Shown: piece after piece, positions 34,696-58,967 of the stretch
Layout: each line of letters begins with the position of its first letter
Position numbering within the stretch: position 1 is the first letter of the stretch
Position numbers and translations under genes: made by a program
The notes under the pieces: model-generated
What the model saw: the letters and a program-made list of their open reading frames with translations, nothing else
Database searches by the model: none
Told to the model about the DNA's origin: nothing
Source: Heterodontus francisci
Lineage: Eukaryota
Direction: 5' to 3'
NCBI RefSeq assembly: GCF_036365525.1
Contig: NC_090404.1
Span: 8,370,001-8,434,000 of the forward strand
Length of the DNA stretch: 64,000 nucleotides

Positions 34696-35100
34696 CACAG
34701 TGACACCGCTCCCAGTCACCCTGGTACAAGAAGTACCGACACTTCAATCTACCAGCCGCACATCACCAGATAGTTGGCGATGCTCAATTATTCCAGGGGT
34801 TTTAAATCATTTCACAATATTCCCTTGTTTCACAATCCATATCTGTTCAAACTGTTCTTTTTGAGACTCTGAGCTCTTAGTGAAATGGCCCAGGAACAGG
34901 GGCCGGATTTGGGTGCTTGATATAAAAGGAGAATAATGTCAATGAATAATGTCAAAGAAAGCGAACTGAAAGGAGGAAATTACAGTGAAATTAAACCAGA
35001 TTACATCGATAATAATATCAATCCTACAATTCAGGATCTGGACCTGGAGTATTTATATTTGGATTTTACAGAGGTATTTGCTCAGATCTCAAACACTGTG

Positions 35101-35114
35101 AAGATCCCAGAAAA
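35101..35114 (-). other. NAR-TCR D segment flanked by 12/12 RSS
   Basis: GGATTTCGT-12-CATTGTG [TTTTCTGGGATCTT] CACAGTG-12-GCAAATACC on - strand (RSSs span 35073-35142). Confidence 0.92.
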
Positions 35115-35506
35115 CACAATGTCTCAAGTCAGCACGAAATCCCCCGGTACCGGGTGAGATGTGGGGACATTAGTTGAACAGCGGGGACTGCGGTTCCCGG
35201 TTCCAGCTGATAGATCAGGATCCCATCTGGTGTTAGGAATTTGGAAGTGGGATCAGTCATTCCCAATCTCCATTCACTGACACCAATCCCGGGAAAAGAC
35301 ATCACCATCCGCACACACTGGGCATTAAGAAAACTCAAGATGTTAATGGAAACAATCCAATAACATTATAAACTAGACTGTGGAGCAGACGGTGCGAGGG
35401 GGAACTGTGGGGTTGAACGGAAGATTAACTCCGTTTTTTGATTTGTTTCTGTGATAATCTGCAGTGAGAGTTTTTGCACCGCGGGAAGCCGAGGCCCATC
35501 ACTGTG

Positions 35507-35971
35507 TGTCCTTGTAACGGTACTCAGCTTTACAGTAATAGGTGGCGGTGTCTTCAACTCTCACATCCCGAATTTCCAGCGAAAATGTCTTTTCTGCCTT
35601 ATTCACCGACACAACAAATCGCCCTCCGCCAGAGATCCGCTCCCGCTTTGTCCCGGTCTGGGTTTGTCTGAAGAAATATCCATTTTGGAATTCATATTCC
35701 CAAAACCCACCTTCATAGTAAACACAGGTGATGGTGAGAGACTGACACTCCTTCCTGGTCACCGCTGCCGGGGTCTGTGTCACTGACTGACTGAAAGAGT
35801 CTGGAAATTAAACAGATAGAGTTTAATGGGTCATCAGAGCCGAACCACACAACGGGGCTAAAATCCGAGACAATGTCTGTAATTCGGATGGACTCCACAC
35901 AATGTCGGTTTGTTTGATCGGTACTCACGGGGTAAACAGACACACAGGGTGAAAACAAGGAGGATTCCCAT
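35507..35971 (-). CDS. NAR-TCR V gene segment (IgNAR-like V), intact; leader 35971-35929, V exon 35800-35507
   Basis: Leader MGILLVFTLCVCLP + GTGAGT donor; TTTCCAG acceptor; open exon SFSQSVTQTPAAVTRKECQSLTITCVYYEGGFWEYEFQNGYFFRQTQTGTKRERISGGGRFVVSVNKAEKTFSLEIRDVRVEDTATYYCKAEYRYKD. It has the NAR-type short FR2/CDR2 (RERISGGGRFV), YYCKA and an extra FR1 Cys. RSS: CACAGTG (35506-35500), 22 bp, GCAAAAACT (35477-35469). Confidence 0.93.
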
Positions 35972-38348
35972 CGTTCTGCTGCCTGGAGCTGATGGTTTAT
36001 ATGACGGGGAGCTGGAGACTGCAGCCCCGGACTGGTCTGGGAGACTGGACCTCAGAGCTGGACTGAAATACTTCAGAGGCATCGAGTTGATTTGCAGAGG
36101 ACTGTGTCCCGGAGATATTTGATGGCCGCACGGTTCCCGGGTCTCTGTCTGTGTGTTGTGTGAATAAGCGACAGGTTTAAAGAGGGAAGCTGCAGTTCTC
36201 TGTCGCTTCATTGGGTCTGTGAGCGCGATGTGAAATCCCCTCCCACATTAGTCTGATGTACAGAGGGTGGGGCTGGGGGAGTTGTTCTGTCAGTAGAGGC
36301 TGCAGCCTTCCTTTCCCCCACAGTAATGAGCTGGCAGGACACCGGGAGAAACCCCCTCCCCACTCTTATTCCAATAGTGCCGGGGATTCTTTAACATCTC
36401 CCTGAACGGGCTGACGGGACCTCGGTTACACGTCTGATCTGCAGGACGGAGACTCAGACCCGGCAGCTTCCCTCAGTCCAGCAACTGAGGGTCAGGTTAC
36501 AATATGAGACAGTCCAGTGACATTGTCAATATCGAGGCAGATATACACAATAGACACAAAGAATAATCTCTCCCTGTCATTTAAACACATGCTTCCTGCA
36601 GTCTCCCCTTCTGTGGTTTGTATTTAAAATGATGTCTCTATTCAGTAATGATTGATTTTCAGGTCTGTAATATTCAGAGTTTCCAGTTACAGTGACAGAG
36701 AATGAAGAGACATTCGGAAGGACAATGGACATCGGGGGAACTCTGTGCTTGGGACTTGTTTTAAAGATCACAGTCACTACCTTGTGCATTCCGTTTATTT
36801 TGTATAAACTGTCTCTGCCCCAGTCTGATCAAATAAACCTTGTGAACAGGCCGCGGTGAAAGGCTCCGGAAAACTGACGGGGAGACAGGGAAAGGGCTGC
36901 TCAGTGCAAAAGTGGTGTTGTGGAGCACAGCCCGGCTCACACATGGCCAATGGTTTCATGGATCTCGCAGCACCTCCAGATGAGGCTGCCGCAGGGTCCT
37001 AATGTCCCCCTGAATACTAAACACTCATCTGCTAGATCGGAACATCATCAAATACCACACACAAACTGTCTGCTTGACACATAATTTTTGCACGTCAAGT
37101 ATTTATCCAATTGCCTTTTACTTTTGAATGTAACTATTGAATCTACTTCCACTGCTCTGTCAAATATAATAACTCTTAGCATAAAATGGCTTTTCCTCAT
37201 GTCTACATCAACAAGTTGTATTTATAGAGCGGCTTTAACGTAACGAAGCATCCCACCTGCAGGTAGGGATAGAAATGTTGTTGAAATATGTTTCTTGCAG
37301 AGGCCAATATTGCGGAGTTCTTAAGGCACCGGCTGCACTAGCACTAACAGAGCAAGGAATATTAGTAATGTTAATAACACTCATGTTACTGCACAGCCCA
37401 ATTTAAAGAGTTCACGAATCCTTGGAAATAATCTTAAGCAGAAATGATGAATGATTGAAGTTATTTCAATCCCCACTTCATGGAGGTTTTCATGAACTTG
37501 GTGAGGGAGCAGAGGAGATTTAATAGACTGTGATCAGGGATGAGGGAATTGTGGAGAGCCTAGAGAAATCGCAGTTATTCTCTATATGTGAAATAAGATT
37601 AAGGAGATTTAATTGCGAGGTTCAAAATTATATTGGGATTTGATATAATCGATCACGTGTCAGTGTTTCCAATGGGAGGACGTTTGATATCCCAAGGACA
37701 CAGATTTCAGGGAATTCCCACAAAAGACAGGGGAGAGGAGATTTTTTTTTAAAGGGGGATTTTCCTGATTTGGAATGTACAGCCTGAAAGGGTGGAGGAG
37801 TCAGATTCAATAGTAATTTTCGGAGAACTGAATAAGTGCTTGAACGACACAAATGCAGGGCTGTGTGGAAAGAGCGTGGAGAATAAGACTAAGGCCATAG
37901 ATCTTTCAAAGAGCCGGCGCAGGTACGATGGGCCAGATGATATAATTCGGGGCTGTCTGATCCTATGTTTCTAGTCGCTTCATTTCTCCCGCAAGTTAGT
38001 TGTTCCCAGTCACCTAAACAGTGATCAGGAGCAGCCTGGCAACAGAATTCTGCCATCCAACTATCTCCCTTTCCGCTCCATCAACACCCTCACTGCGCAA
38101 TCTCTGCGGTTACACAGAATCTTGAGTTAACTCAAACTGGAGTTGGTGGCAGCACCGCCCACAGCTTTAGTTTGCTGCTCGCTCTCTCTCTCTCTTTCTC
38201 TCTGACCTGCCTTGCCTGCCCCGTTTTGGAGATTGCTGTCGCTGGTCCTTGTTTGGTATTAAATCGGCAGTGCAGTGTGGCGAGGATCTGTCTTCCTGCT
38301 CCGACAGAATATTTCCCAGAGTGCAGAGTTACAGACTCCAGGACCACC

Positions 38349-38845
38349 ATGTGGAACCGTCTCTCGCCGATTCTCATTATTATATCACTTCTCAGTAAGT
38401 ATTTCCTTCCCAGTAAAAACCCATTCTCCACAGAGCTGTTAATATGGGTGAAATGATAGTGATGCTGGTGTTGATGGTTAGATTGATCGATATGGTATTG
38501 ATGCACATTGTGACTGTTACTATTCTTTGTATGTTAGAATGGAGCCACAATGTAACAACCGGTTCTTGAAATGATGGTTGAAGGGGAAGGTAATATCACA
38601 CTAATGTGTACCATGAAAACAAGCATTTCTAACACTTTCTGTGCTCCGGTACAGTCTGCACCCCGGGCAGCCTCCACAGTACGTGTTTTATCACTAAGGA
38701 GGAATATTACACCTGAACCCCGACTTCACTGACAGATCCTCTTCTACCTTTAGTAAAACTGCCAAGATTACCCAGCTAAAGATCCACAACGCCCTGATCT
38801 CGGGCACCGCTGTGTATTTCTGTGCCATCGGGTGCCATGAGCCCC
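38349..38845 (+). pseudogene. TCR V pseudogene (42-kb V family)
   Basis: Leader MWNRLSPILIIISLL 38349-38394; frameshifted exon from 38538 ending ISGTAVYFCAI; RSS decayed. Confidence 0.85.
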
Positions 38846-40119
38846 ACCCCGCTGCAGAGATGTCGCTGATACTGGATTCACTGAGAGTTGCAGTTAGAGC
38901 TCACCAGAGGGCGCCCTCACACCAGTAAACAGAAGCTATAATTCAGCCTCCACTCTGAGATTCTCAGGAACCATCTTAAAATTGCAATGAAGCACAGCAA
39001 TCAACAGCCACAGCTGATGTCCACTTGTGCAGTGATATTAGATTGTGATTACAACGCGTATTTATAAGAAAAATGAACTTTATATTCGATCTGTGATGTC
39101 TTGGCTCCCTTTTTGTTTCTCTATGCTCTACCCCTGTCCACTTGTTCCTCATTATCGCGTGGCTCCACTGTTTACCTAAAAGGGAATACATTTCCTTTTT
39201 CAGGTCTTCAGTTTAAAGGTTTAAAACCTTTGTTTCTGCTCGGAATATAAATTCAGAACCGCTCCAATCGAGGTGGAGCTGTCAGATCAGGCCAAGGGCT
39301 CAACACAGAATTCCTCACACCCTGTTCACTGCCATCTTCCCATTCAGTTTCCAGTACAGCCACCAGAGGGCGGCAGATAGTAATACTCCTTTCATGGATC
39401 AAACGTTGGGCAGTGAGGTGATTTCTGTTTCTCCAAAAGTTGAGTAAAACTTGGAATATATAGAAGTTTAATACTTGAAATCAATTTACTTCAATGGATT
39501 GGGAAGGTACATTGAATAATAATCCTCACAAAGATGCATCCACGTATCGAACGATTGGTTTCTGATACGAACCAGTGAGCAAGACAAGTAAGTGGAAGTT
39601 GTGGAAGATGGTGAAAGAATATTAAAATGTGAATGACAAACACACTCTGAGATTTCATTTCTGAAGCAGCTCGCTGTCCCGTGAGTGGAAATAGATGTTA
39701 AAGGTTTATTTCTGTTCGGTTGTTTTGTTCAGTAACAGCAGATATCATTGTTCGAATAGGAAGGATCTGTAAATCACTCCAGCAAAATACAGAATCATTG
39801 TTAGTTCACTAGTTAACTAATCGGTGAAGGAAATCTCACTGCAGTCACGGTTACCAGTGTGCTAATGGTGAAGTTACTGGAATTTGAGAGAAAGAGTTGA
39901 CGGTCGCAATAACCAGACAAGGGTTTCAGTCCCCGCCCCGTATCTCTCATCGTAGAACCATTTCCCCGATAAGGACAGTGACTGTAGCCCAATCCGAGGT
40001 GTTTCCATTCACTGACAACCAGCTCACCACCTACCGGTCTCACAGCACCACTGGGGACACAAGAAAGTGAGGTGAGAAAATCCTGAGACATGATTGCAGA
40101 TTATTGAGGCTGGGGATTA

Positions 40120-40300
40120 GGACGGGTGCATCATCTGGCAACCGGAACCAGTGTTCAGAGCAGGATCACGGCTCGGTTCCTTGCAGCAGAGAAGTGCAGT
40201 TCTCTGACTGTTAGCGCCACTCGGCTGACAGGCACCGCCACCTATTTCTGTGTAATGGAAACAAAGTGGAGCAAAGATCAGCAGGGACCGAACAAAAACC
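40120..40300 (+). pseudogene. 3' half of a TCR V with 23-RSS
   Basis: SRITARFLAAEKCSSLTVSATRLTGTATYFCVME; CAAAGTG-23-ACAAAAACC (40262-40300). Confidence 0.8.
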
Positions 40301-40402
40301 TGCCGTGGGCTGGTCCTGATCGTGTGTAGCCTATGCAGTTCACAGAGCTCTAGCAGTTTTATAACACTCTCATTTTTTCCGCCGAACTCGACACCAAACC
40401 CC

Positions 40403-40780
40403 ATGCGTTCCCCGTATTCCTTACTGATAATAATCACCGAGCTGCTCGGTGAGTCTGTGTTTCAAAGGTCATTGCCTGTCTCATATGTCATATTCAATCC
40501 CAGGCTTAGACGCAATCTGTGTTTTGTTACAGGAGCGAGTGGCGCAGACTCAGTGTCCCAGGATAAGTCTGAGTTCACGGTTCCGGAAGAACATTCTGTA
40601 ATATTCAGCTATCGTTACTCCACTACCGACAGCTTTCTCTCCCTCCATCGGTGCATCAACATTCCGGGAAAGCTCCGAGATATTTACCTAGGCGATCAAA
40701 CTCAGGTCACAAAGATAAGTCTCAAGGTTTCCCAGAATGATTCTCTGTTGGTTTGGACAAGGATACAGACAGCAACACAC
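40403..40780 (+). pseudogene. 3'-truncated TCR V pseudogene (10.3-kb V family)
   Basis: Leader MRSPYSLLIIITELL + GTGAGT; GASGADSVSQDK..SVIFSYRYSTT; frameshift, no YYC or RSS. Confidence 0.75.
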
Positions 40781-41119
40781 CGGTTTGAATTGAAACCTGA
40801 TAGTGGTAGTTCTCAGTGGACATGGCATCAAAGTAATCCTGCCGATAAAGCCCCAAAGAACACTTAATGGAGCTGTAAACTGGCTGAGGGTTTTCTGCGG
40901 GGTCTTGGTTTTTATCTGACGATGTACCTCACTGCACAGTAATAGAGTGCCCCGTCCTCCACACTCAGGTCACTTATATTGAGATAACCGCCAGTTATTG
41001 TTCGGGGATTTTGTTTTCCTTAAGTGCTACTTAAGGGACAATTTAAAGGATTATCGGGGAAAGGTGGAGACCGGGGATGAAAGGGACAGATAGGGAACAA
41101 CTGTAGGAATCTCTCCACG

Positions 41120-41330
41120 AATAAAAACAAAGAAATGCTATTAATACTCAGCAGGTCTGGCAGCGTCTGTGGAGAGAGAAGCATGGTTAACGTTTCAGGT
41201 CTGATGAAGGGTCACTGACCTGAAACATCAACTCTGCTTCTCTCTCCACAGATGATGACAGACCTGCTCAGTATTTCCAGCATTATTTGTTTTTGTTTCA
41301 GATTTGCAGCAACTGCAGTATTTTGCTTTT
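41120..41330. mobile_element. Penelope terminal fragment with ~80-bp inverted repeat and hammerhead-like core
   Basis: 41122-41200 is the reverse complement of ~41217-41298; matches 61090-61190; CTGATGA at 41201, GAAAC at 41222. Confidence 0.78.
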
Positions 41331-41995
41331 AGTCTCTCTAAGAACACAGGGTATGGACGGTGGGTCAGAGAGGCAGCAGCAAAGGGAAGCTGTGGGAGGG
41401 GCTGCCGCAGGCAGTGTTGTCACGTTGAGGATCCACTTGTAAGGAACGGAATTAAATAATAGTGTCTCTTTCGAAAATTCTACAACTCTGCCTTTCTATA
41501 AGACGTGTGGCACTTTCACATCCATTACATATTGCAGGAAGGCATATTCGGGACAGGATTGTCAAGACTATTATGTTAGCCAATATTAAGTGAATCATTC
41601 GCGAAATCGGTTGAAACCACAACTGAATCTATGGGCATCTGGGTTGGAATGGTTCTGAATTAACGTGCCGAGATTTAGCAAAGATTTATATTTGTAAACT
41701 AAAGACTGCAAGAAGGAAATGTGTACAATACTGGGTCAAGTGTAGAGACAGGGTGTGACAGGAACAAGTACGCAGGGAAAGAGCATCGAAAGACAAAATG
41801 TGAGTAAAGATCGCTGACTTCGATTTGTAAAGCTCATTTTTTAAATGATAAATGCAAGTTGTAGTCACAGACTAAGATAACTGCGCAAGTGGACCTCGCC
41901 TGTTGTTGAGGTTTGTGCTCTGTCGCAGTTTTAAGAATCTCCCGGTGACTCTCACTGTGGAGGCTGAATTATTGTTTCTGTTTATCGGTGCAAGC

Positions 41996-42022
41996 GCGCC
42001 CTCTGGTGGGCGCTAACTGGAA
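41996..42022 (-). promoter_or_regulatory. CTCF-like site just 3' of a V RSS (paralogs at 38889-38915 + and 45717-45742 -)
   Basis: TTCCAGTTAGCGCCCACCAGAGGGCGC: core plus upstream motif. Confidence 0.7.
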
Positions 42023-42073
42023 CTCTCAGTGTGGGTTTTTGTACAGGATCTGCGAGATCTCTGCAGCAGTGTG

Positions 42074-42564
42074 GGGCTCATGGCACAGAAATACACGGCG
42101 CTGTCGGAGATCAGGGTGTTGCCGACCGTTAGCTCGGTAATCTTGGCAGTTTTATTAAACGTAGCCGAGAACCGAACAGTGATGTCCGTGTTCCTGTATA
42201 CATTCCCTCCAATAATACGAAGTATGTTGTGTGGAGGCTGTCCGGGGCGCTGACTGTACCAGTACACATAAGGGCTTGTTTTCAAGGTGCAGGTTTGTGT
42301 GACTTTCGATCCCTCTTCAACCGTTCTTTCAGCAACCGGCTGTTCCACTGTGTCTTGGTGGCTCCATTCTAACAGAAAAATAGTAATATCAGCAATCAGA
42401 ATTTGCCTCATATTGATTGACATAACAGTCACCATCACCATCACTATTATTTTACCAACAATAACATCTAGAATGCAGCAGGGGGAGAATGGATTTTTAC
42501 TGGGAAGGAAATACTTACTGAGAAGTGATAGAAAGATGAGAAGCGGTGAGAGACGGTTCCCCAT
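42074..42564 (-). CDS. TCR alpha/delta V segment, potentially functional; leader 42564-42519, V exon 42368-42074
   Basis: Leader MGNRLSPLLIFLSLL; DTVEQPVAERTVEEGSKVTQTCTLKTSPYVYWYSQRPGQPP...SDSAVYFCAMS; RSS CACACTG-24-ACAAAAACC (42073-42034). Confidence 0.88.
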
Positions 42565-42894
42565 GATACTTCCTGAATCTGTAACTCTGCAGTGCAGGAA
42601 ACTCTCTGTCGGAGCAGAAATACAGATCCCCGTCCCACTGCACTGCTGATCCAACCAATGACAAGAATGGACCCGCAGCAGCAATCTCTCCAATAACAGA
42701 TTGTGGTCAGAGTGAGAGCAACAAACGGAAGCTGTGGGCGGAGATAGCGCAGACTCAAAATTGAGCGAAGTGTGCGAAGACACTCAGCTGCACTCGGAAC
42801 TAATGGGGAGGAAATAGCGACGGTTGAATCTCCAGAAGTCTGAGGCTATCCTGCACCTGCGTACTGGCAACAGAGTGTGAGGGACATGAGGGGA

Positions 42895-43470
42895 CTAGAA
42901 TGATAGAATCTTAGAGCACGGAATGAGGCCATTCGGCCTGAAGGTACCTCTGCCTCTTTGAAGGAGCTCTCCAATTCATTTTTCACTTCTCATGTTTTCC
43001 ACAAAACCCGGCTTTACTTTCCCTTTCAACTTATACACAATCCCCTTTTGAAAGTTACTGTTGAATCTTTTTCCGCCGCCCTTTTAGGCAGTGCATTCCA
43101 GATTTTAACGAATTGCTGTCTAAAAAATAAATCTCAGCTTGGCTTGTCCTTTTTTCATTTCTCTTAAAGCGGGGTGCTTGGGTTATCGATTTTTCTGCTC
43201 GTGGAAACAGTTACGAGTGATCTACTTCATCAAAACCACTTAGAATTTTGAGCATCTCAATTAAGTCTCTCTTTAAACTTCTTTCAGATAAGGCGGACAA
43301 TTCCTGTCTCTTCAGTCTGTTCACATAACAGTCAGTCATCTCTGATACCATTCCGCACTTTCCCCAATGTCTTGACATTCTTTCTAATTCGTGGTGCCCA
43401 GAATTGGACACAGAACTCCAGTTGATGTCTGAACAGTGATTTACAAAGGTTTGACATCATTTTCTGGCAT
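42895..43470 (-). mobile_element. Old CR1 3' fragment (similar relics ~33060-33600, 37480-37975, 46540-47020, 53250-53735)
   Basis: RHQLEFCVQFWAP, LKRDLIEMLKIL. Confidence 0.7.
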
Positions 43471-43819
43471 AAACTGCGGCAAAAAATAAAGTTTGGGTCC
43501 AATGAGCTGCAATTTAGGTTTCTAGGAGACATTTTATATGTAAATCAGTAAACCGTAAATCCACTCAATGGCCACATTCTCAACTAGATTGAACAGAATC
43601 CGCCAGCAGAGGGCGCGAAAATCAAAACATGGGAATTACAAAGTCATGTGATGCCAGCACCAATGCCAATTGGCATGGCAGGCTGAGTGAGGTCACAATA
43701 GTACCGCCCCCTGCAGTATGTGGGTGGAACTATGAGCTGAACAGGCCCCAGGTTACCTCTCTCCCCTTCTCAATCTTTGGCTCATTCCATTCCAATCACG
43801 GCGTGAGATTCAATTAGAC

Positions 43820-44322
43820 ATGTTTCTAATAATACTTGCGGCTGTGTTGCACAGTAAGTACTGGATTAGATTACGCAAGGTAAGTTAGCAGATTCATGCA
43901 AATGGTTTGCACTAGGATTTAATCCACTTAGTTGGGTAGATGAGATCTTAGACGCACTCACACAGATCGACGCAAGTTTAAATCAACCTTGTTTAACCTG
44001 CTTTTCTTTATTCCTCTACCTTTAAAGACGGACTATGTGCAGATCCAGTAACTCACTCTCCGGTGAGAATAACCTTGTCAGAAGGGCGTTTGGTGCAGGT
44101 AGATTGCTAATATTCAGCCCAGGTTATAAAGAACATGCAACGGTAACGGCAAAAACCGACACAGCTTCCAAGCTGGATTATTAGCAAACTTGTAGCACTT
44201 AAGGAAAACAAAATCTCCGAACAATATCTGGCGGCTGCTGACAAGTCTAAGAAGTACGGTTATCTCAATATAAGTGACCTGAGTGTGGAGGACGGGGCAC
44301 TCTATTACTGTGCAGTGAGGTA
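43820..44322 (+). pseudogene. TCR V pseudogene; leader 43820-43853, exon 44028-44322
   Basis: MFLIILAAVLH + GTAAGT; ADPVTHSP..VQVDC*YS..R*RQKP..LNISDLSVEDGALYYCAVR; decayed RSS. Its 3' end is also present inverted at ~40920-41030. Confidence 0.85.
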
Positions 44323-44469
44323 CATCGTCAGATAAAAGCCAAGACCCCGCAGAAAACCCTCAGCCAGTTTACAGCTCCGTTAAGTGTTCTTTGGGGCTTT
44401 ATCGGCAGGGTTACTTTGATGCCATGTCCACTGAGAACGACCACTGTCAGGTTTCAATTTATACAGTTG

Positions 44470-44823
44470 TGTTGCTGTCTGTATCCTTATCCAAACCAAC
44501 AGAGAACCAGTCTGGGAAACCTTGAGACTTATCTTTATGACCTGAGTTTGATCGCCTAGGTAAATATCTCGGAGCTTTCCCGGAATGTTGATGCACCGAT
44601 GGAGGTAGAGAAAGCTGTCAGATGTGGAGTAACGATAGCTGAATATCACGGAATGTTCTTCCGGAACCGGACACTGAGTCTGCGCCACTCGCTCCTGTAA
44701 CAAAACACAGATTGTGTCAAAGTCTGGGATTGAATGTGACGCCTGACACAGACAATGACCATTCAAACACAGACTCAGCGAGCAGCACGGTCATTATTAT
44801 CAGTAAGGAATGCGGGGAACGCG
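44470..44823 (-). pseudogene. Inverted-arm copy of the 40.4-kb truncated V
   Basis: Reverse-complement match to 40403-40780; ATG->ACG. Confidence 0.75.
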
Positions 44824-45787
44824 TGGGGTTTGGTGTCGAGTTCGGCGGACAAGAATGAGATCCTTCCTATTCGAACAATGATATCTGCTGTTGCTGAACA
44901 AAACAACCGAACAGAAATAAACCTTTACCATCGATCTCCATTAACGGGACAGCGAGCGGCTTCTGAAATGAAATCTCAGAGTGTGTTTGTCATTCACATT
45001 TTAATATTCTTTCACCATCTTCCACAACTTCCACTTACTTGTCCTGCTCACTGGTTAGTATCAGAAACCAATCGTTCGATATGTAGATGCATCTTTGTGA
45101 GGATTATTGTTCAATGTACCTTCCCAATCCATTGAAGTAAATTGAATTCAACTATTAAACTTCTTTCTATTCCATGTTTTACTCAGCTTTTGCAGAAACA
45201 GGAATCACCTCACTGCCCAACGTTTGATCCATGAAAGGAATATTGCTAACTGCCGCCCACTGGTGGCTGTACTGGGAAGTGGTCAGATGGCAGTGAACAG
45301 GCTGTGAGGAATTCTGTGTTGAGCCCTTGGCCTGATCTGACAGCTCCTGCTTATAGAAGCTCGATTGGAACGGTTCTGAATTTATACTCTGAGCAGAAAC
45401 AAACGTTTTAAACCTTTAAACTGAAGATCTGAAAAAGGAAATGTATTCACTTTTAAGTAAACAGTGGAGCCACGCGATAATGAGGAACAAGTGGACAGGG
45501 GGAGAGCATAGAGAAACAAAAAGGGAGCCAAGGCATCAGAGATCGAATATAAAGTTCATTTTCTTATAAATACGCGTTGTAATCACTATCTAATATCACT
45601 GCACAAGTGGACATCAGCTGTGGCTGTTGATTGCTGTGCTTCATTGCAATTTTAAGAAGGTTCCTGAGAATCTCAGAGTAAAGGCTGAATTATTGCTTCT
45701 GTTTATCGGTGTGAGGGCGCCCCCTGGTGAGCTCTAACTGCAACTCTCAGTGAGTCCGGTATCAGCAACATCTCTGCAGTGGGGTGG

Positions 45788-46168
45788 GGTTCATGGCACA
45801 TGATGGCACAGAAATACACAGCGGTGCCAGAGATCAGGGCGTTGCGGATCTTTAGCTGGGTAATCTTGGCAGTTTTACTAAAGGTAGAAGAGGATCGTCA
45901 GTGAAGTCGGGCTTCCGGTGTACTATCCCTCCATAGAGATAAAACATGTACTGTGGAGGCTGCCCGGGGCGCTGACTGTACGGGAGCACGCAAAGTGTTA
46001 GAAATTCTTGTTTTCATGGTACACGTTTGTGTGATATTACTTTCCTCTTCAACCATCATTTCATGAACTGGTTGTTACATTGTGTCTTGGTGGCTCCATT
46101 TTTACTGGGAAGGAAATACTTACTGAGAAGTGACATAATAATGAGAAGCGGCGAGAGACGGTTCCATA
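45788..46168 (-). pseudogene. TCR V pseudogene, inverted-arm copy of the 38.3-kb V
   Basis: ATG->ATA, most of the intron deleted, frameshifted exon ending ISGTAVYFCAI. Confidence 0.85.
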
Positions 46169-47725: not shown

Positions 47726-48070
47726 GGGGGCGGCACAGTCGCGCAGTGGTTAGCACCGCATCCTCACAGCTCCAGCGACCTGGGTTCAATTCTGGTTACT
47801 GCCTGTGTGGAGTTTGCAAGTTCTCCCTGTGTCTGCGTGGGTTTCCTCCGGGTGCTCCGGTTTCCTCCCACAGCCAAAGACTTGCAGGTTGATTGACCAT
47901 TATAAATTGCCCCTAGTAGAGGTAGGTGGTAGGGGAATATAGGAACAGGTGAGGATGTGATAGGAATATGGGATCAGTGTCGGATTAGAATAAATGGGTG
48001 GTTAATGGTCGGCAGAGACTCGGTGGGCCGAAGGGCCTGTTTCAGTGCTGTATCTCTAAATCAAAATAAA
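47726..48070 (+). mobile_element. Full-length tRNA-derived SINE (HE1-like)
   Basis: A-box-like GCGCAGTGGTTAGC, B-box GGTTCAATTC, 3' tail GGGCCGAAGGGCCTGTTTC shared with CR1; absent at the homologous left-arm site (~36805). Confidence 0.88.
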
Positions 48071-48885
48071 TCGATTCAAAATAAACGGATTTCACAAGGT
48101 AGTGACTGTGATCTTTAAAACAAGTCCCAAGCACACAGTCCCCCCAATGTCCATTGTCCTTCCGAGTGTCTCTTCATTCTCTGTCACAGCAGCTGGAAAC
48201 TCCAACCTGGAAATCAATAATTATTGCATTGAAATATCATTTTAAATACAAACCACAGAAAAGGCGGGTTCAGGAAGCATGTGTTTAAATGACAGGGAGA
48301 GTTTATTCTTTGTGTATATTGTGTATATCTGCCTGGATATTGACAATGTCACTGGATTGTCTCTTATTGCAATCTGACACTCAGTTGCTTGACTGAGGGA
48401 AGCTGCCGGGTCTGAGGCGCCGTCCTTCAGATCAGACTTTTAACTGAGGCCCCGCCAGCCCGTTCAGGGAGATGTTAAAGAATTCCCGGCACTATTGGAA
48501 TAAGAGCAGGGAGGGAGGATTCTCCTGGTGTCCTGGGCCCACATTCCACCCTCAACAAACACCACCCAATAGTGGGTGAAAGGATGGCGGCAGCTTCTAC
48601 TGACAGAACAACTCCCCCAGCCCCACCCCCTGTACATCAGACTAATGTGGGAGGGGATTTCACATCGGGCTCACAGACCCAATGAAGCGACAGAAAACTG
48701 CAAGTTCCCTCTTTAAACTGTCGCTTATTCACACAACACACAGTCAGAGACCCGGGAACCGTGCGGCCCATCAATGATCTCCGGGACACTGCCCTCTGCA
48801 AATCAACTCGACCCCCCTGAAGTATTTCAGTCCAGCTCTGAGGTCCAGTCTCCCAGAGCAGTCCAGGGCTGCAGTCTCCAGCTCC

Positions 48886-48900
48886 CCGTCATATAAACCA
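48886..48900 (+). promoter_or_regulatory. TATA box with adjacent CRE half-site of the NAR V promoter (mirror ~35993-36007)
   Basis: CGTCATATAAA ~30 bp upstream of the ATG in both copies. Confidence 0.55.
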
Positions 48901-48921
48901 TCAGCTCCAGGCAGCAGAACA

Positions 48922-49403
48922 ATGGGAATCCTCCTTGTTTTCACCCTGTGTGTCTGTTTACCCCGTGAGTACCGATCAAACACACCGACATTGTGTGGAT
49001 TTAATATAAAGCTGCCCGAGTCCATCCGAATTACAGACAATCTCTGGGGTTTTAGCCTCGTTGTGTGGTTTGGCTCTGATGGCCCATTAAATTCTCTCTG
49101 TTTAATTTCCAGACTCTTTCAGTCAGTCAGTGACACAGACCCCTACAGTGGTGACCAGGAAGGAGTGTCAGTCTCTCACCATCACCTGCGTTTACTACGG
49201 TCGAAATTGGGGTTATTATTTTCAAGATGGATATTTCTTCAGACAGATCCAGACCGGGACAAACCAGGAGCGGATCACCGGCGGAGGGCGATTTGTTGTA
49301 TCGATGAATAAGGCAAAAAATACATTTTAGCTGGAAATTCAGGATGTGAGAGTTGAAGACACCGCCACCTATTACTGTAAAGCTGAGTACAGGTACAAGA
49401 ACA
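48922..49403 (+). pseudogene. NAR-TCR V segment with one nonsense codon; leader 48922-48964, V exon 49113-49403
   Basis: Paralog of the 35.5-kb V; TCG->TAG at 49328-49330 (NTF*LEIQDVRVEDTATYYCKA); RSS CACAGTG-22-GCAAAAACT (49404-49441) intact. Confidence 0.92.
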
Positions 49404-49793
49404 CACAGTGATGGGCCTCGGCTTCCAGCGGTGCAAAAACTCTCACTGCAAATTATCACAGAAACAAATCTAAAAACAGAGTTAATCTGCCGTTCAACCC
49501 CACAGTTCCCCCTCGCACCGTCTGCTCCACAGTCTAGTTTATAATGTTATTGGATTGTTTCCGTTAACATCTTGAGTTTTATAAATGCCCAGTGTGTGCG
49601 GATGGTGATGTCTTTCCCGGGATTTGTGTCAGTAAATGGGAGATTGGGAATGACTGATCACAGTTCCAAATTCCTAACACCAGATGGGATCCTGATCTAT
49701 CAGCTGGAACCGGAACCGCAGTCTCCGCTGTTATCTAATGTCCCCACTTCACACCCGGTACCGGGGGATTTTGTGCTGACTTGAAACATTGTG

Positions 49794-49807
49794 TTTTCTG
49801 GGATCTT
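49794..49807 (+). other. NAR-TCR D segment flanked by 12/12 RSS
   Basis: GGATTTTGT(49766)-12-CATTGTG [TTTTCTGGGATCTT] CACAGTG-12-GCAAATACC(49835). Confidence 0.92.
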
Positions 49808-50212
49808 CACAGTGTTTGAGATCTGAGCAAATACCTCTGTAAAATCAAAATATAAATACCCCAGGTCCAGATCCTGAATTGTAGGATTGATATTATTATC
49901 GATGTAATCTGGTTTAATTTCACTGTAATTTCCTCCTTTCAGTTCGCTTTCTTTGACATTATTCATTGACATTATTCTCCTTTTATATCAAGCGCCCAAA
50001 TCCGGCCCCTGTTCCTGGGCCATTTCACTAAGAGCTCAGAGTCTCAAAAAGAACAGTTTGAACAGATATGGATTGTGAAACAAGGGAATATTGTGAAATG
50101 ATTTAAAACCCCTGGAATAATTGAGCATCGCCAACTATCTGGTGATGTGCGGCTGGGAGATTGAGGTGTCGGTACTTCTTGCACCAGGGTGACTGGTAGC
50201 GGTGTCACTGTG

Positions 50213-50276
50213 GTATATAATTACTGGAAGGATGATTCTGCAGATGGATCCGGGACGGTGGTGACTGTCACAGCCG
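50213..50276 (+). CDS. NAR-TCR J segment with 23-RSS
   Basis: ACTTCTTGC(50174)-23-CACTGTG(50212); VYNYWKDDSADGSGTVVTVTA; GTAAGT donor at 50277. Confidence 0.9.
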
Positions 50277-50590
50277 GTAAGTGACTCTAAACCCATACAG
50301 GCCATCTCTGTAAAATGCTCATCGTCACTTTATCATAGTTTTCAGCAAAACTTCAATCGCCTTCAAACTAAAACACAACAGTTTCCAATAGAGCTTTTCC
50401 ATTGCAGTTTTAGATTGGGGAACAGAATATGAACCGGGAGTCGGGTCCGGGTGTGATTCCGGAGTAAGTAGATGTGAGATCCCCACAGAGCAGGCAATCT
50501 GGCCCGGGTAGGTGTGACTCCATCTGGATCAGCATTGGTTTCACGGGCATGTCCGAGCATTTCATCAAGATTCCGTACTTACTCTCTTTC

Positions 50591-52525
50591 TTGCACTAGA
50601 GGACTATAAAGACAGTAGGAAGGAACTTAAGCAAGGAGTTAGGAGGGCTAAAAGGGGTCATGAAAAGTCATTGGCAAACAGGATTAAGGAAAATCCCAAG
50701 GCTTTTTAAACATATGTAAAGAGCAAGAGGGTAACCAGGGAAAGGGTTGGCCCACTCAAGGACAGAGATGGGAATCTATGTGTGGAGCCAGAGGTAATGG
50801 GCGAGGTGCTAAATGAGTACTTTGCATCAGTATTCACCAAAGAGAAGGACTTGGTGGATGATGAGCCTAGGGAATGGAGTGCAGATAGTCTCAGTCATCT
50901 TATGATCAAAAAGGAGGAGGTGTTGGGTGTCTTGAAAAGCATTAAGGTAGATAAGTCCCCAGGGCCTGATGGGATCTACCCCAGAATACTGAGGGAGGCA
51001 AGGGAAGAAATTTCTGGGGCCTTGACAGAAATCTTTGCATCCTTATTGGCGACAGGTGAGGTCCCAGAGGACTGGAGAATAGCCAAAGATGTTCCTTTGT
51101 TTAAGAAAGGTGGCAAGGATAATCCAGGAAATTATAGGCCGGTGAGCCTTACGTCAGTGGTAGGGAAACTATTAGAGAGGATTCTTCGGGATAGGATTTA
51201 CTCCCATTTGGAAACAAACAAACTTATTAGCGAGAGACAGCATGGTGTTGTGAAGGGGAGGTCGTGTCTTACTAATGTGATTGAGTTTTTTGAGGAAGTA
51301 ACGAAGATGATTGGTGAAGGAAGGGCAGTGGATGTTATCTATATGGACTTCAGTAAAGCCTTTGACAAGGTCCCGCATGGCAGACTGGTACAAAAGTTGA
51401 AGTCACACGGGATCAGAGGTGAGCTGGCAAGATGGATACAGAACTGGCTCGGTCATAGAATCAAGAGGGTATCAGTGGATGGGTGTTTTACTGAATGGAG
51501 GGCGGTGACTAGTGGTGTTCCGCAGGGATCAGTGCTGGGACCTTTGCTCTTTGTGGTATATATAAATGATTTGGAGGGAAATGTAGCTGGTCTGATTAGT
51601 AAGTTTGCGGACAACACAAAGGTTGGTGGAGTTGCGGATAATGATGAGGATTGTCAGAGGATACAGCAGGATATAGATCGGTTGGAGACTTGGGCGGAGA
51701 ATTGGCAGATGGAATTTAATCTGGACAAATGTGAGGTGATGCATTTTGGAAGGTCTAATGCAGGTGGGAAGTATACAATAAATGGCAGAACCCTTAGGAG
51801 TATTGACAGGCTGAGAGATCTGGGCGTACAGGTCCACAGGTCACTGAAAGTGGCAACGCAGGTGGATAAGGTAGTCAAGAAGGCATTTGGCACGCTTGCC
51901 TTCATCGGTCAGGGCAAAGAGTATAAAAATTGGCAAGTCATGTTGCAGTTGTACAGAACCTTAGTTCGGCCACACTTGGAATATTGCGTGCAATTCTGGT
52001 TGCCACACTACCAGAAGGACGTGGAGGCTATGGAGAGGCTACAGAGCAGGTTTGCCAGGATGTTGCCTGGTCTGGAGGGCATTAGCTATGAGGAGAGGTT
52101 GGAAAAACTCGGATTGTTTTCACTGGAACGACGGAGGTGGAGGGGCGACATGATGGAGGTTTACATAGTTATGAGCGGCATGGACAGAGTGGATAATCAG
52201 AAGTTCTTTCCCAGGGTGGAGGAGTCAGTTACTGGGGGACATAGGCTTAAGGTGAGAGGGGCAAAGTTTAGAGGGGATGTGCCAGGCAAGCCTTTTACAC
52301 AGAGGGCGGTGAGTGCCTGGAACTTGCTGCCAGGGGAGGTGGTGGAAGCAGGTACGATAGTGACGTTTAAGAGACATCTTGACAAATATATGAATAGGAA
52401 GGAAATAGAGGGATATGGGCCCCGGAAGTGCAGAAGATGTTAGTTTAGGCAGGCATCAAGATCGGCGCAGGCTGGGAGGGCCGAATGGCCTGTTCCTGTG
52501 CTGTACTGTTCTTTTTTCTTTGTTC
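50591..52525 (+). mobile_element. Young 5'-truncated CR1 with a 553-aa open RT region, in the J-to-supporting-V intron
   Basis: ORF 50782-52443 with RT motifs (but FADNTK for FADDTK); TCTTTC on both sides; absent from the left arm. Confidence 0.93.
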
Positions 52526-54751
52526 TTTCCCTCGCTCCTAAATGAGCTCAGTTTGTCGACACTCCGACCCCGCTCTCGCAGTTACATGTGATTGTCCCTG
52601 TGAGCACATGAGCGGGGTCACAGAACTCTCTCCCGGGGGAGAGGTTGTTGTCCAAGCCGGGCAATGTGAATAGAGGGAGAGTGAACACTACATGACAACA
52701 GCCGGCCCGATATCTGCAGCAGCAGAAACACGACAATATGACAAAACAGGCTTCAGATACAAGAGATCCTGTTGTCGGTGCCGATGGCATTTTATTATTG
52801 GGTTTCAGTGACTGAAATTAGTTACATTGTAGATGAAGTTAATGTCAATTGCCTTCATCCAATCATTTCCCTCCTTTTCCGCCCTCAGACTGAAATTCGA
52901 ATGTTTGCAGTTCCAGATAATTCTCGATATTGAATATTGATGTTTGAGAGATTGGATTGGAGTAATTTAACTGTATCCCTGCTAACTGTTAATTGGAACA
53001 ATACTGGACACTGAGGGAGTGAGGAAGAGATGCTAATGTTCTGAGAAAGGAGATCAGGAACACTCCAGGGAATAACTGAAGACTGGAGGACAATCTATTT
53101 AGAACCAGCAAAAAATAATTCACCAAAATGGATAGAAATATTAAACAAACTCTGAGCCGTTCGAAGTACAATCCGACACCAGGGTGAAGGGTGACATTTA
53201 TGGAGGGAAGGGCAGTGATGAACTCTGGTGTTCTCCAGGATACTGCAGTGTGCAGTTTTAATCACCTTATTTAAGGAAGGATCTATTTGCTTTGGAGGGA
53301 GTGAAACAAAGCTCCACTAGACTGATTCTTGGGATAAAAGGACAGTTCATGTGGAGAGTTTATGGGACTATGCAGATGTTCCGTAGAGTTTCGAAGAATA
53401 AGAGTCTACAGCTTGGGGTGACAGTCTCACAATAAGAGGTCGGTCATTTTGAACTGAGAAGAAGAGACATTTCTTCAGTCAAACCTTTGTTATGAGTTTG
53501 TGGAATTCTATACATCAGAGAGCTGTGGATGCCCAGTGGTTGAGTATATTCCAGGCAGTGTTCGATAGATTTGTGGATACTAAAGGAATCAAAGGACCTC
53601 TGGATAGTGCGGGAAGGTGGAGCAGATGATCAGCTTTGATCTTATTGAATGGCTGAGCAGAATTGAAAGGTGAAATGGTCTACTCCTGCTCCTATTACTG
53701 ATGTTCTTACATTATCAGCTTGGATTTCTTACACTGAAAGGAACATAGGAATATAGGAACAGGAGTAGGCCATTCAGCCCGTCGAGTCTGCTCCGCCATT
53801 CAACTAGATCATGGCTGATCATCTACCTCAATGCCACTTTCCCGCATTATCCCCACATCCATGATGTCGTCAGTATCCAGAAATCAATCGATTTATGTCT
53901 TGAACATGCTCAATGAATGACCTTCCACAGCTCTCTGGGGTAGAGAATTCCAAAGATTCATCAGAAGAAATTCCTCCTCATCTCAGTCTTAAATGGCCGA
54001 CCACTTACGCTGAGATTATGTCCCCTGATTCTAGACACAAGGGAAACATCCTATCTACGTCCACACTGTCAAGCCCTGTAAGATTTTTGTAAGTTTCAAT
54101 TCGATCACCTCTCATTTTTCAAAACTCTGGAGAATATAGGCCCAGTTTCTTCATTCTCTCCTCATATGACAATCCCGCCATTCCAGGGATTAGTCTGCTA
54201 AACCTCCGTTGCACTCCCTCTATGGCAAGTATATCCTTCCTGAGATGAGACCAACACAGTACACAATACTCCAGGTGCGATCTCACCAAGGCTCTATACA
54301 ATTGCAGCAAGACGTCTTTACTCCTGTACTCGAAACCCCTTGCGATGAAGGCCAACATACCATTTGCCTTCTTAATTGCTTGCTCATAAAAAGCGACTCA
54401 TAAACTAAAACACCCAGGTCCCTTTGGACAACAGACTTCCCAACCTCTCACCATTTAAGAAATGCTCTGTCTTTCTATTTTTTCTACCAAAGTAGATAAC
54501 ATCGCACTTATTCACATTATATTCTATCTGCCATGTTCTTGCCCATTCAGCTAGCCTGTCGAAGTTCCCTGGAAACCTCCTTGCATCTTCCTCACAACTT
54601 ACATTCCCACCCATTTTTGTGTCATCAGCAAATGTGGAAATATTACATTTGGTCTCCACATCCAAGTCATTTATCTAGATTATGAACAACTATGACCCCA
54701 GCACTGATCCTTGCTGTTTCCTTCTCGTCACAGCCTGCTATCCTGAGACTG

Positions 54752-56170
54752 ACCCGGAAGACTGGAGGATAGCTAATGTTGTGCCTTTATTTAAGAAGGG
54801 CAGCAGGGATAAGCCCGGGAACTACAGGCCGATGAGCCTTACATCAGTGGTGGGAAAGTTATTGGAAGGGATTCTGAAAGACAGGATTTATATGCATCTG
54901 GAAATGCATGGTCTGATGAGGGATAGTCAGCATGGCTTTGTGCGTGGGAAATTATGTCTCACGAATTTGATTTAGTTTTTTGAGGATGTGACCAAGAGGA
55001 TTGACGAGGGAAGGGCGATGGACGTTGTCTACATGGACTTTAGCAAGGCCTTTGACAAGGTCCCACATGGTAGGCTGGTCCAGAAGGTTCGAACACATGG
55101 GATCCAGTGTGAGCTAGCAAATTGGATACAAAATTGGCTTGGTGATAGGAGGCAGAGGGGGTACTGGAGGGTTGTTTTCCAGATTGGAGGCTGGTGACCA
55201 GTGGTGTGCCGCAGGGATCGGTGCTGGGCCCTCTGTTGTTTGTCATATATATTAATGACTTGGATGTGAATGTAAGGGGCATGATTAGTAAGTTTGCAGT
55301 TGACACCAAAATTGGTGGTATAGTGGACAGAGAAGAAGATTGTCTAAGGTTACAACAGGATATAGATCAACTGGGAAAGTGGGCAAGGGAGTGGCAAATG
55401 GAATTTAATGCAGACAAGTGTGAAGTGATCATTTTGGGAAGTTAAAGCAGGCAGGACATATACAGTGAATGGCAGGGCCCTGGGGAGTGTTCTTGAGCAG
55501 AGAGACCTTGGGTGCAAGTACATAGTTCCCTGAAAGTGGCAACACAGGTAGACAAGGTGACGAAGAAGGCGTATGGCATGCTTGCCTTCATCGGCCGAGG
55601 CATTGAGTACAAGAGTTGGGACGTCATGTTACAGTTGCATAAAACGTTGGTTAGGCCGCATTTGGAGTACTGTGTGCAGTTCTGGTCGCCGCACTACAGG
55701 AAGTATGTAATTAAGCTAGAGAGGGTTCAGAAAAGATTCACAAGGATGTTGCCTGGTTTGCAGAGCTTGAGTTATACATAGAGATTGGATAGGCTGGGTC
55801 TGTTTTCCCTGGAGCGAAGGAGGCTGAGAGGGGACATGATAGAGGTTTATAAAATTATGACAGGCAGTGATAGGGTAGATAGCCAGAGTCTGTTTCCCAT
55901 TGTAGGGGTGACTAAAACTAGAGGGCATAGATTTAAGGTGAGAGGGAGGAGGTTTAAAGGTGGATCAAAGGGGTATCTGGAATGAGCTGTCTGAGGAGGT
56001 GGAACAGTACCGACATTTAAGAGGCATCTGGACAGGTACTTGAATGAGTAAGGCATAGAGGGATATGGAATTAATGCAGGCAGGTGGGATTAGTATAGAT
56101 AGGTATTATGGTCGGCATGGACACGGTGGGCCGTAGGGCCTGTTTCTATACTGTACGACTCTATGACTCT
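54752..56170 (+). mobile_element. CR1 nested in the - strand CR1 of the right arm
   Basis: PEDWRIANVVP..RT motifs..(ACTCTATG)n tail; absent from the left arm. Confidence 0.88.
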
Positions 56171-58550
56171 ATTCCTATTCTTCGTTTCCTCTCTGTCAAC
56201 TAATTTTAAATCCATTCCTGTGCATTACCCCCCCATCCCATGTGCTCTAATTTTGCTTACTAACCTCTTGTGTGGGACCTTATCAAAAGCCTTCGAAAAA
56301 TCCAAATGCACACATCCACTGGTTCTCCTTTATCTATTCTACAATCCATGTTGACTCGTCACAAACATAACGTTATTTTCTAAGTATCAAGTTATCACAT
56401 CCTTTATAGTAGATTCGAACATTTTTCTACTCCTGACGTCAAACTAACAGGTCTATAGCTCCCCGTTTTCTCTCTCCCTCCTTTCTTAAACAGTGGGCTT
56501 ACATTTGCTACTTTCCAGTCTGCAGGAACCTTTCTGGAATCTACAGAATTTTGAAGGATAATCCATCCATTATCTCTATAGCCACCTCCTTCAACTCTCT
56601 GGGATGTAGCTCATCTGGTCCAGGAGAGTAATCAACCTTCAATCCAGTTTATGTTTCGAGTGCTCAGGCATTTAAGTTCCTCAGTTTCACAAGTCCTTTG
56701 GTTCCCTAGTGTTTCTGGGGGATTTTCAATATCTTCCTCGTAAATAGAGACAGAAAGTAATTGTTTAGTTTCTCTGCTATTGCCCTGTTCTCCATTATAA
56801 ATTCTCCTGTCTCCGCTTGTAATGGGCCCAGTTTTGTCCTTACTGATCGTGTCCTTTTCACATACCTAGAGAGGCTGTTACAGTCCACCTTTATGTTTCT
56901 CACTAGCTTGCATTCACAATCTCTTTTCCCTTTCTTTATCAGTTTCTTGCTCATCTTTTGCTGGATTCTAAATTGCTCCCAATCCTCAGGTTTAACACTT
57001 TTTTGGCAATCCTATAAACCACCTCCTTTGATCTAATGTAATCTTTAACTTGTTTTGTTAGTCATGGTTAATTCACCTTTCCTGTTGGGTTTTTGTATCT
57101 TAGAGGAACTTATATTCCTCCTGAAAAACTGAGAAATCCTCAAAAAAACATCAATAACCATCAGGAATGTTTGAACAGGCTGGGCTTCTTTCCCCTGGAA
57201 AACAGAGTAAAATAATGAGACTTCATGGAAATCTTTTAAATTATGGGCTGCTGGATATGGAGAAACTATTTTTTTGTGGGTGAATCCAGAACAAGGAGAC
57301 ACTCATATATGATGTCACTGACGGAATAAATTCATTAAGCAGAATACATTTACCCAGAGACAGGACAGAATGTGGATCTCGCTGCCACATGGAGTGGTTG
57401 GAGTAGATCGGAATGATGCATTTATGGGACGACTTGAAAAAAAAAGGAGGAAGAAATGAAAAGAGGGACAGAGGGTTCAGGGTGGAAATGGTTAAATAGA
57501 GTCCGGGCGCAGGGAGGCTTGTGTGGAGTACAAACACTGGTATAGAACGGTTAGGCCGAATGGCCTGTTCCTGCTCTGCAGATTCTGTATAATATAAAAT
57601 TCAAAGAAAACTCCGCTTGGAGAACACAGGAGAGGATTATCCAATGGGCTGAAGGAATTGAAATTGAAATTGTCAGTGATCCGGAAGAGCCAGTTCCCAG
57701 TGAGCAACAGTTAAACCACTGAGAAAATAGCACAAACTGAACCCAACTGACAACTGAGAGACTTCGGAACAAGTTCCCATGATGGCAAAAACCGCAAACA
57801 GCACAAATTAAATGTAGAAATAAAATGAAACTAACTTCATTCTTTTTTCAAATTAAAGGGCAATAGAGAAAAATGGGCCTTATTGATGGAAGAAAGTAGA
57901 CAAATAGAGTGAAAGGCAACAATAAGCTCTCATGAAGTGTTGAACTGTTGTAAACGAATGACCTTTGATGTTCACTGTCAGTTTCGCTCAATCTGTGCTG
58001 ATGAATTTCATTACTCTCTGTTGGATCTTACTGTGTGTACTGATATAACACAGCTGGGTTACTCCCGGACTGACAGTTTTTGTCAAGTGATTCTCTCACT
58101 GATATTAACATGTTTCCTCCAGTTTGTCTTCCACCAAGAAAAATAGACACAGAAATTTAATAGAATCATTGAATCATACAACATGGAGGGATGTCATTCT
58201 GCCCATCGTCTTTGTAGGTGCTGTCAAATTGTTCCCACTCTCCCTTGCTTTTCCTCCATGACCCATGCGTTTTCCAGTAGCAACATTTATCCAATTCCCG
58301 TTTAAAAGTTAATATCAATCTTCTCCTACCACCCATTCTGACAGTGCATTCCAGATCATAACTACTAGCTGTGTAAAATAAAATACACATCATCTCCGCA
58401 CTGGTTCAAATCTCAATAACGGTGAATACATTTCGAACAGGCTTCAAATTAAGCAAATTACCGCGAAAACAATAACTATTCCTGCGATTGACAGGTTTCG
58501 CCGCGCAAACACTGGCTGAACAATTGATAATATTCATTTTCATACTGCAG

Positions 58551-58856
58551 ATTCCAGTTCCCTGGTGTCCCGGAGCCCGCCTCTGCAAACCTCTGCTGCC
58601 GGTGACACCGTCACTTTAAGCTGCGAATATTCAGGGTTCTGTCAGTACACAGTGCACTGGTACCATCAATCCCCAGGGCAGTCTCCGAAATACCTGCTTC
58701 AGAGACAAACATCAGGAACGGATAATAAAGAAAACGCAGCCGGGGGACGAATTTCTGCTTCTATCGATCCTGCCGAAAAAATCAGCCGGTTAAAAATCTC
58801 CAAACTACAACTGAGCGACTCCGCTGTGTATTACTGTGCACTGAGTCGGCGCGCAG
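58551..58856 (+). CDS. Leaderless supporting TCR Vdelta exon (copy 2; canonical, intact)
   Basis: DSSSLVSRSPPLQTSAAGDTVTLSCEYSGFCQYTVHWYHQ...SDSAVYYCALSRRA: C23, W41, C104 and the CDR1 Cys are all present; RSS CACAGTG-23-ACAAAAACC (58857-58895). Confidence 0.93.
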
Positions 58857-58967
58857 CACAGTGATACAGAACAGGGAGAGAGCTGTACAAAAACCTGAAC
58901 CTGGTGGGATTACAGACACACAGTGATACCGAGCACGGAGGTACGGCCGTTAAGTGAATTTGCAGAC

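Follow-up and report, generated by a model that had tools for sequence, protein, structure and literature searches.

Inverted NAR-TCR cassettes in Heterodontus francisci and the question of recombination between them

NAR-TCR is a receptor whose usage is described as cassette-bound. It is the doubly rearranging T cell receptor (TCR) delta of cartilaginous fish (Criscitiello, Saltis and Flajnik 2006, following the accounts in PMC1845163, PMC3457774 and PMC12227049). In mouse Igh, robust RAG scanning uses convergent recombination signal sequences (RSSs) only, while at Igk, joining by inversion needs strong RSSs and diffusion over short distances (PMC11153149). Here we describe a stretch of 64,000 nt from the shark Heterodontus francisci (assembly GCF_036365525.1, NC_090404.1:8,370,001-8,434,000, zero N; hereafter the window), in which two NAR-TCR cassettes lie head to head on opposite strands. 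A first-pass annotation of this DNA had proposed that the two are reciprocally damaged and could complement each other through inversion by RAG.

We consider it fairly probable that the locus is a diverged head-to-head inverted duplication of a complete NAR-TCR cassette within the shark TCR alpha/delta variable (V) region, that the cassettes assemble in cis, and that inversion between them is probably rare at most.

Two cassettes of the NAR-TCR plan

Cassette A is the one on the minus strand, cassette B lies on the plus strand, and cassette C is a third, part of which lies beyond the window end. RSSs were sought with a strict scan of the entire 64 kb on both strands, and Pfam and protein searches were made exon by exon, with leader, V, diversity (D), joining (J) and supporting V kept apart. 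The features of the cassettes are listed below; CDR1 stands for complementarity-determining region 1.

Cassette A
35928-35971, minus strand: leader exon of NAR V(A), with its ATG at 35971 and a GT donor directly after
35507-35800, minus strand: NAR V(A) exon; open frame, Pfam V-set 5.6e-09
35469-35506, minus strand: 22-RSS of V(A); heptamer CACAGTG 7/7, 22-nt spacer, nonamer GCAAAAACT 7/9
35073-35142, minus strand: D(A); 5' 12-RSS 35142-35115, coding part 35114-35101 (TTTTCTGGGATCTT), 3' 12-RSS 35100-35073
34633-34734, minus strand: J(A); 23-RSS 34734-34696, coding part 34695-34633 (ending in YRKWKHDSADGSGTVVTVTA), GT donor next
29243-29548, minus strand: supporting V(A); leaderless, AG acceptor, Tyr codon TAC 29477-29475 at the place of Cys23, CDR1 Cys kept, Pfam V-set 4.3e-16
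29142-29242, minus strand: consensus 23-RSS in two copies (29242-29204 and 29180-29142) after the end of supporting V(A)

Cassette B
48922-48965, plus strand: leader exon of NAR V(B)
49113-49403, plus strand: NAR V(B) exon; in-frame TAG at 49328-49330 in framework region 3 (TCG in A)
49404-49441, plus strand: 22-RSS of V(B)
49766-49835, plus strand: D(B); 5' 12-RSS 49766-49793, coding part 49794-49807, same as in D(A), 3' 12-RSS 49808-49835
50174-50276, plus strand: J(B); 23-RSS 50174-50212, coding part 50213-50276 (ending in YNYWKDDSADGSGTVVTVTA), GT donor at 50277
58551-58856, plus strand: supporting V(B); leaderless, open frame, Cys23 TGC at 58622-58624, CDR1 Cys, Pfam V-set 5.2e-18
58857-58895, plus strand: consensus 23-RSS of supporting V(B)

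Cassette C
63178-63483, minus strand: supporting V(C); protein identical to that of supporting V(A), Tyr23 included; the rest of the cassette lies beyond the window end

The cassette features given by the first-pass annotation were all recovered from the assembly by inspection of the sequence, the RSS scan and HMMER. By every criterion that can be tested, A and B are NAR-TCR cassettes. Judged by the marks set out in PMC1845163, both NAR Vs qualify: each has the leader MGILLVFTLCVCLP and the stretches RKECQSLTITC and GYFFRQ, and the Trp of the WYRK motif is absent. In both cassettes the NAR V is followed by a D and a J of the cassette's own, with their RSSs, and only then by the supporting V. 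In A, B and C alike the supporting V is leaderless and has the CAG/ATTCC acceptor, the Cys in CDR1 (SGFCQY) and a consensus 23-RSS, and RNA contigs in which the supporting V is spliced onto a NAR V(D)J were found at the family level (see below).

V(A) carries the Cys of the a-b loop (RKECQS), FFRQ in place of WYRQ, and the CDR1 EGGFWEYEFQN, and it ends in YYCKAEYRYKD; the CDR1 of V(B) is one codon shorter. On its promoter side V(A) has an octamer-like motif at 36090. J(B) reads ..WKDDSADGSGT, against ..WKHDSA in J(A), and the two Js are told apart by their first codons and by a single His/Asp exchange. The supporting V contains ..QIHTSGEQNN in its Tyr23 form and ..QRQTSGTDNK in its Cys23 form. 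In a word-index protein search, the index of which held no proteins from this animal, the best match to the V(A) exon had 85% identity, and the supporting V query returned one chimaera match. The long tail of V(A) (..CKAEYRYKD) was considered as a possible germline-joined D; this was ruled out, as an intact heptamer follows directly and similar tails occur in relatives from other species.

The strict scan yielded 14 RSS sites in the whole window, and 13 of them adjoin the end of a V open reading frame (ORF) or a D segment (the 14th is at 16065), which argues that they are not chance motifs. Eleven of these 13 lie within the NAR cassettes or behind the supporting Vs. Cassettes A and B have the same arrangement, i.e. 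V-22, 12-D-12, 23-J, which is of the heavy-chain type. The RSSs of the NAR segments are of middling quality, with heptamers at 6-7/7 and nonamers at 7-8/9. The supporting Vs have perfect consensus 23-RSSs. These are repeated head to tail behind the exons, with two copies in A (29142-29242), one and a decayed copy in B (58857-58940), and at least three in C (63017-63177).

Within each cassette the V-D and D-J gaps are about 365 bp each, and on these short distances we base the view that joining would be deletional and in cis. The plan of a cassette is a leader and a NAR V with its 22-RSS, a D between two 12-RSSs, a J with a 23-RSS and a splice donor, an intron of 5-8 kb, and a leaderless supporting V-delta with a consensus 23-RSS. 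The NAR domain would be assembled per cassette by two short deletional joins; the J would then be spliced to the supporting V, which would itself have been separately rearranged to a TCR-delta D-J. No TCR-delta D-J-C was found within the 64-kb window.

A comparison of A and B gave dN 0.063 and dS 0.195 for the supporting Vs, and dN 0.094 and dS 0.171 for the NAR Vs. Since dN is below dS for both types of V, both cassettes have been under selection for most of their history.

Inverted arms and a tandem unit

The cassettes are embedded in two larger arms, which were compared by blastn and by inverted repeat pairs I1-I21, and these arms belong in turn to a repeated unit. The features at this scale are as follows.

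29159-40990, minus strand: arm A, which holds cassette A; blastn blocks of 84-92.5% identity to arm B, inverted repeat pairs I1-I21
44257-58940, plus strand: arm B, which holds cassette B; delimited by blastn and inverted repeats, with a reverse-transcriptase ORF at 50782-52443
42074-42380 (exon limits approximate), minus strand: V of the ordinary TCR alpha/delta type, situated between the arms in the unique centre; an RSS-like site follows, then a CTCF-like core at 42009
17960-29567, no strand assigned: left part of a 41-kb unit; recurs in direct orientation at 58934-63502 and beyond

The arms are collinear over nine blastn blocks of 84-92.5% identity (mean about 91%), and the cassettes stand head to head with about 13 kb between them; the unique centre between the arms measures 3.3 kb. 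By these comparisons the arms are best described as genuine paralogues, i.e. as the two halves of a diverged head-to-head inverted duplication. An origin of the arms in an assembly fold-back was considered and ruled out by the level of identity (84-92.5%), the many indels and the insertion of a LINE in one arm.

Arm B is longer than arm A because of repeat insertions at 50590-52524 and 54755-56170. These retroelement insertions are present only in the intron between J and supporting V of cassette B, which is thereby about 8.3 kb long, and the first of them contains the reverse-transcriptase ORF (553 amino acids, 50782-52443).

The order of the repeat unit of about 41 kb is spacer, A, centre, B (17960-58933), with the next copy starting at 58934. 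Pieces of 300 nt from 17960-29567 and 58934-63502 are 96-99% alike, and the longer flanks about 96.6%. The tandem duplication of the 41-kb unit is later than the inverted duplication, and it produced cassette C, a younger copy of A, whose V(C), just past the window end, is probably close to V(A). The first copy of the unit has an extra insert of about 7 kb, which includes a 45-nt tandem array (26298-27651).

Each arm also contains a decayed TCR-type V (40322-40867 on the plus strand and 44380-44766 on the minus strand; ..FSYRYSTTDSF..) with Tyr replacing the first Cys. Both of these decayed Vs face the centre, away from the NAR V. CTCF-like cores occur between the cassettes at 39360 (plus), 42009 (minus) and 43603 (plus), the core at 42009 following the RSS of the central V at a distance of about 25 nt.

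The D-J intergenic stretch 49834-50133 (34775-35074 in arm A) is 98-100% identical between the arms, as against the arm mean of about 91%, and a DNA contig identical to 49834-50133 occurs at about 6x the single-copy depth. The tract of high identity (34695-35173 and 49735-50213) ends exactly at the border between the J heptamer and the J coding part. Antisense ORFs of 73 and 90 amino acids in the D-J stretch had zero Pfam matches. The tract represents a conserved non-coding element or else the product of gene conversion.

Geometry of the inversion and transcripts of the family

The first-pass annotation had noted that the 22-RSS of V(A) has the same orientation as the 5' 12-RSS of D(B), both lying to the left of their coding ends. 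This is correct, and the two form a legal 12/23 pair. The D(B) signal has a heptamer scoring 6/7 (CATTGTG in plus-strand letters) and a nonamer scoring 8/9. As both RSSs are on the low-coordinate side of the coding ends, the pair is inversional. With cuts between 35506 and 35507 and between 49793 and 49794, the inverted segment (35507-49793) comprises 14,287 bp, which bears out the earlier estimate of about 14.3 kb with the promoter side included, the octamer-like motif at 36090 being inside.

Such an inversion would abut V(A), together with its upstream region and the 36090 motif, to D(B), J(B) and supporting V(B), and the signal joint 35506/49793 would stay in the chromosome. It would be a reciprocal swap, as V(B) would come to precede D(A). 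Joining of V(A) to D(B) by inversion is, as far as the signals themselves go, permitted.

Transcription was followed with assembled Logan contigs (not reads) of four runs, DNA as well as RNA (the latter X5 and X18), aligned to cassette B alone. The four were taken from DNA runs of the same animal and from three small runs of a second study of the same sample. The alignment threshold was 85% likeness, so that letters of the A, B and C types could be compared side by side. Contigs lose rare variants, and the phase of V to J across the diverse junction is beyond their reach.

At the family level, the splice from leader to V (48965 to 49114) is present in RNA contigs of X5 and X18. The same two runs contain V-J joints (49390/49391 to 50243, and 49399 to 50225) with 9-30 inserted letters, which are non-templated. 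RNA contigs part from the J at its donor (50276) and go on into the opening letters of a supporting-V exon; this splicing is shown for the family and for J letters of the A/C type, not for B specifically. From these splices and V-J joints it follows that the NAR-TCR family is rearranged, spliced and expressed in the animal. The depth of DNA contigs on the cassette is 100-370, compared with about 10 for single-copy pieces, which points to many paralogues of the cassette.

At 50242 the RNA contigs lack the letter specific to J(B) and read G at full depth in both runs (91.4 of 91.4 for X5, 12 of 12 for X18), with the reservation that contigs lose rare variants; in the DNA contigs a letter other than G makes up about 28 of 151 depth at this place. 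A contig covering 49412-49556 and identical to B was found in RNA run X5. Two RNA contigs with J letters of the A/C type run into the supporting V, one unrearranged and one rearranged, and the first 30 supporting-V letters of the rearranged one fit the A/C type.

Alternative readings and known systems

That the cassettes are reciprocally damaged had been the starting point of the proposal. The assembly contains both changes, Tyr23 of supporting V(A) as well as the TAG of V(B). If real, the stop clearly damages V(B). At 49329 the A of the assembly occurs in none of three DNA contigs, all of which have C, as would be expected if the TAG were an assembly error or one polymorphic allele, with B intact in some or all haplotypes. 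However, the same three contigs have non-B letters at the adjacent diagnostic places and hence derive from paralogues. Moreover, at almost every diagnostic place the contigs on cassette B, those of the DNA run included, miss the B-specific letters, so that this test is blind and the contigs neither confirm nor refute the TAG. The change itself is a clean C-to-A substitution, with no homopolymer around it. We think an assembly error or a polymorphism very unlikely.

The other half of the claim may be wrong. An alignment made with HMMER to solved V domains places the Tyr of supporting V(A) on the canonical Cys, a residue near invariant in V domains; nevertheless, the altered exon has been kept in two copies, A and C, which differ at three positions in 309 nt (1.0%), all three of them synonymous with no replacement, while the flanks differ by about 3.4%. 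The probability that three random changes would all be silent is 0.014, or 0.044 if only transitions are considered. This points to constraint on the Tyr23 form after the duplication, although three substitutions are too few for a firm test of selection. The splice sites and RSSs are all intact, and, as described above, two RNA contigs with an A/C-type J enter the supporting V, the rearranged one in letters of this type; these contigs reach neither codon 23 nor a reading frame into the constant region. Tyr23 may thus be tolerated, and A and C would then be fully functional, the domain folding without the canonical disulfide or with the help of another cysteine, and only V(B) being a pseudogene. 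We regard this as a serious possibility, albeit one that we lean against.

The proposal itself holds that inversion of 35507-49793 joins V(A) to D(B)-J(B), that the product is spliced to the canonical supporting V(B), and that the damaged cassettes complement each other while cross-cassette combinations are gained. The geometry allows it: the 12/23 pair is legal and in the same orientation, with the CAC of the heptamer intact on both sides, and the promoter side of V(A) travels with the inverted segment. V(A) is still open though its own supporting V lacks Cys23, inter-cluster rearrangement by inversion has been documented in zebrafish immunoglobulin light chains (IgL; PMC3014032), and the B-identical contig in RNA run X5 indicates that the chromatin of B may be transcribed. 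Against these points, no hybrid molecule was found among the contigs aligned to cassette B, a material that gives no phase between V and J. A weak argument in the same direction is that RNA contigs, unlike DNA contigs, do not show the J(B) letter at 50242. V(A) has its own D about 365 bp away, compared with 14.3 kb to D(B), and the two partners are separated by three CTCF-like cores (39360, 42009 and 43603). The supporting V with Tyr23 appears to be constrained, and with many other cassettes apparently in the genome there is no obvious need for a rescue. What survives of the complementation claim is therefore the permissive RSS geometry; its functional part found no support in the data examined here, and we judge this account as a whole to be unlikely. 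The gain in diversity expected by the first-pass annotation shrinks likewise: pairing across cassettes is permitted, but as D(A) equals D(B) and the Js are nearly alike, it would consist mainly of V(A) with another supporting V.

We therefore prefer the reading of a diverged inverted duplication with assembly in cis. The stop in V(B) and Tyr23 of supporting V(A) and V(C) would then be independent changes, as expected in a large birth-and-death family, and the V(A)-D(B) inversion would probably be a rare side reaction at most and no device for complementing cassettes. Some cross-cassette joints are probably formed, at a low level; a frequency high enough to be of consequence, or for a rescue of V(A), seems improbable to us.

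Several observations weigh against this preference. The A/B pair is just 14 kb apart, and inverted V segments are in use at other loci. The supporting Vs of A and B are oppositely oriented; should both be in use, inversion is the only way for at least one of them to reach the TCR-delta D-J, and it is then evidently routine. The signal of constraint on Tyr23 consists of three substitutions only (p about 0.014-0.044). Furthermore, one rearranged X18 contig (record 10, 49233-50276) combines J and supporting-V letters of the A/C type with a V that, as assembled, is not V(A). This V has 24 differences from V(B), as compared with 14 between V(A) and V(B), and it could be V(C), a further paralogue, the outcome of somatic mutation, or a cross-cassette join.

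It is doubtful that V(A), and V(C) by the mirror-image inversion, join D(B)-J(B) at a useful rate, so that V(A) is expressed on the canonical supporting V of its neighbour and the repertoire extends across cassettes. If this were true, NAR-TCR would be a small translocon-like system, in which NAR V and supporting V are re-paired, and not a set of closed V-D-J-V units, which would bear on the relation of cluster-type to translocon-type antigen-receptor loci. The locus offers a well-defined natural test case for this, as the partners are distinguished by known diagnostic letters. The supporting V with Tyr23, of which two copies show silent differences only, also raises the question of whether a V domain can function without the canonical disulfide.

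The likeness to NAR-TCR as described extends to the leadered NAR V with its a-b loop Cys, the D and J of its own, the leaderless supporting V-delta with CDR1 Cys and RSS, and the splicing of the J onto it. In contrast to the described cassettes, those studied here form a head-to-head inverted pair with an adjacent tandem copy, and they include one V with a stop and two supporting Vs with Tyr23. The new points are thus local, i.e. the inverted pair within a tandem unit, the single stop, and the Tyr23 supporting V in two copies.

As a mechanism, inversion across cassettes would add one more example to a class of events already known, with zebrafish IgL as the precedent. There, neighbouring VL-JL-CL clusters of opposite orientation can be joined by inversion, giving combinations beyond one cluster (Zimmerman et al. 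2008, PMC3014032). The zebrafish case differs in that it was shown by cDNA and concerns the V-J joining of a light chain, without D and without a second V domain, in a bony fish, whereas in the shark it is a possibility. A second likeness is to the inverted Vs of mammals, i.e. those of the Igk clusters and, at TCR beta and delta, the inverted V that follows the C exons, which also join by inversion and retain the signal joint (PMC12227049, PMC11153149). The mammalian examples, however, are single translocon Vs joining the D or J of their own locus, while in the shark window V(A) would join the D of a sister cassette, one that has its own V 360 bp away.

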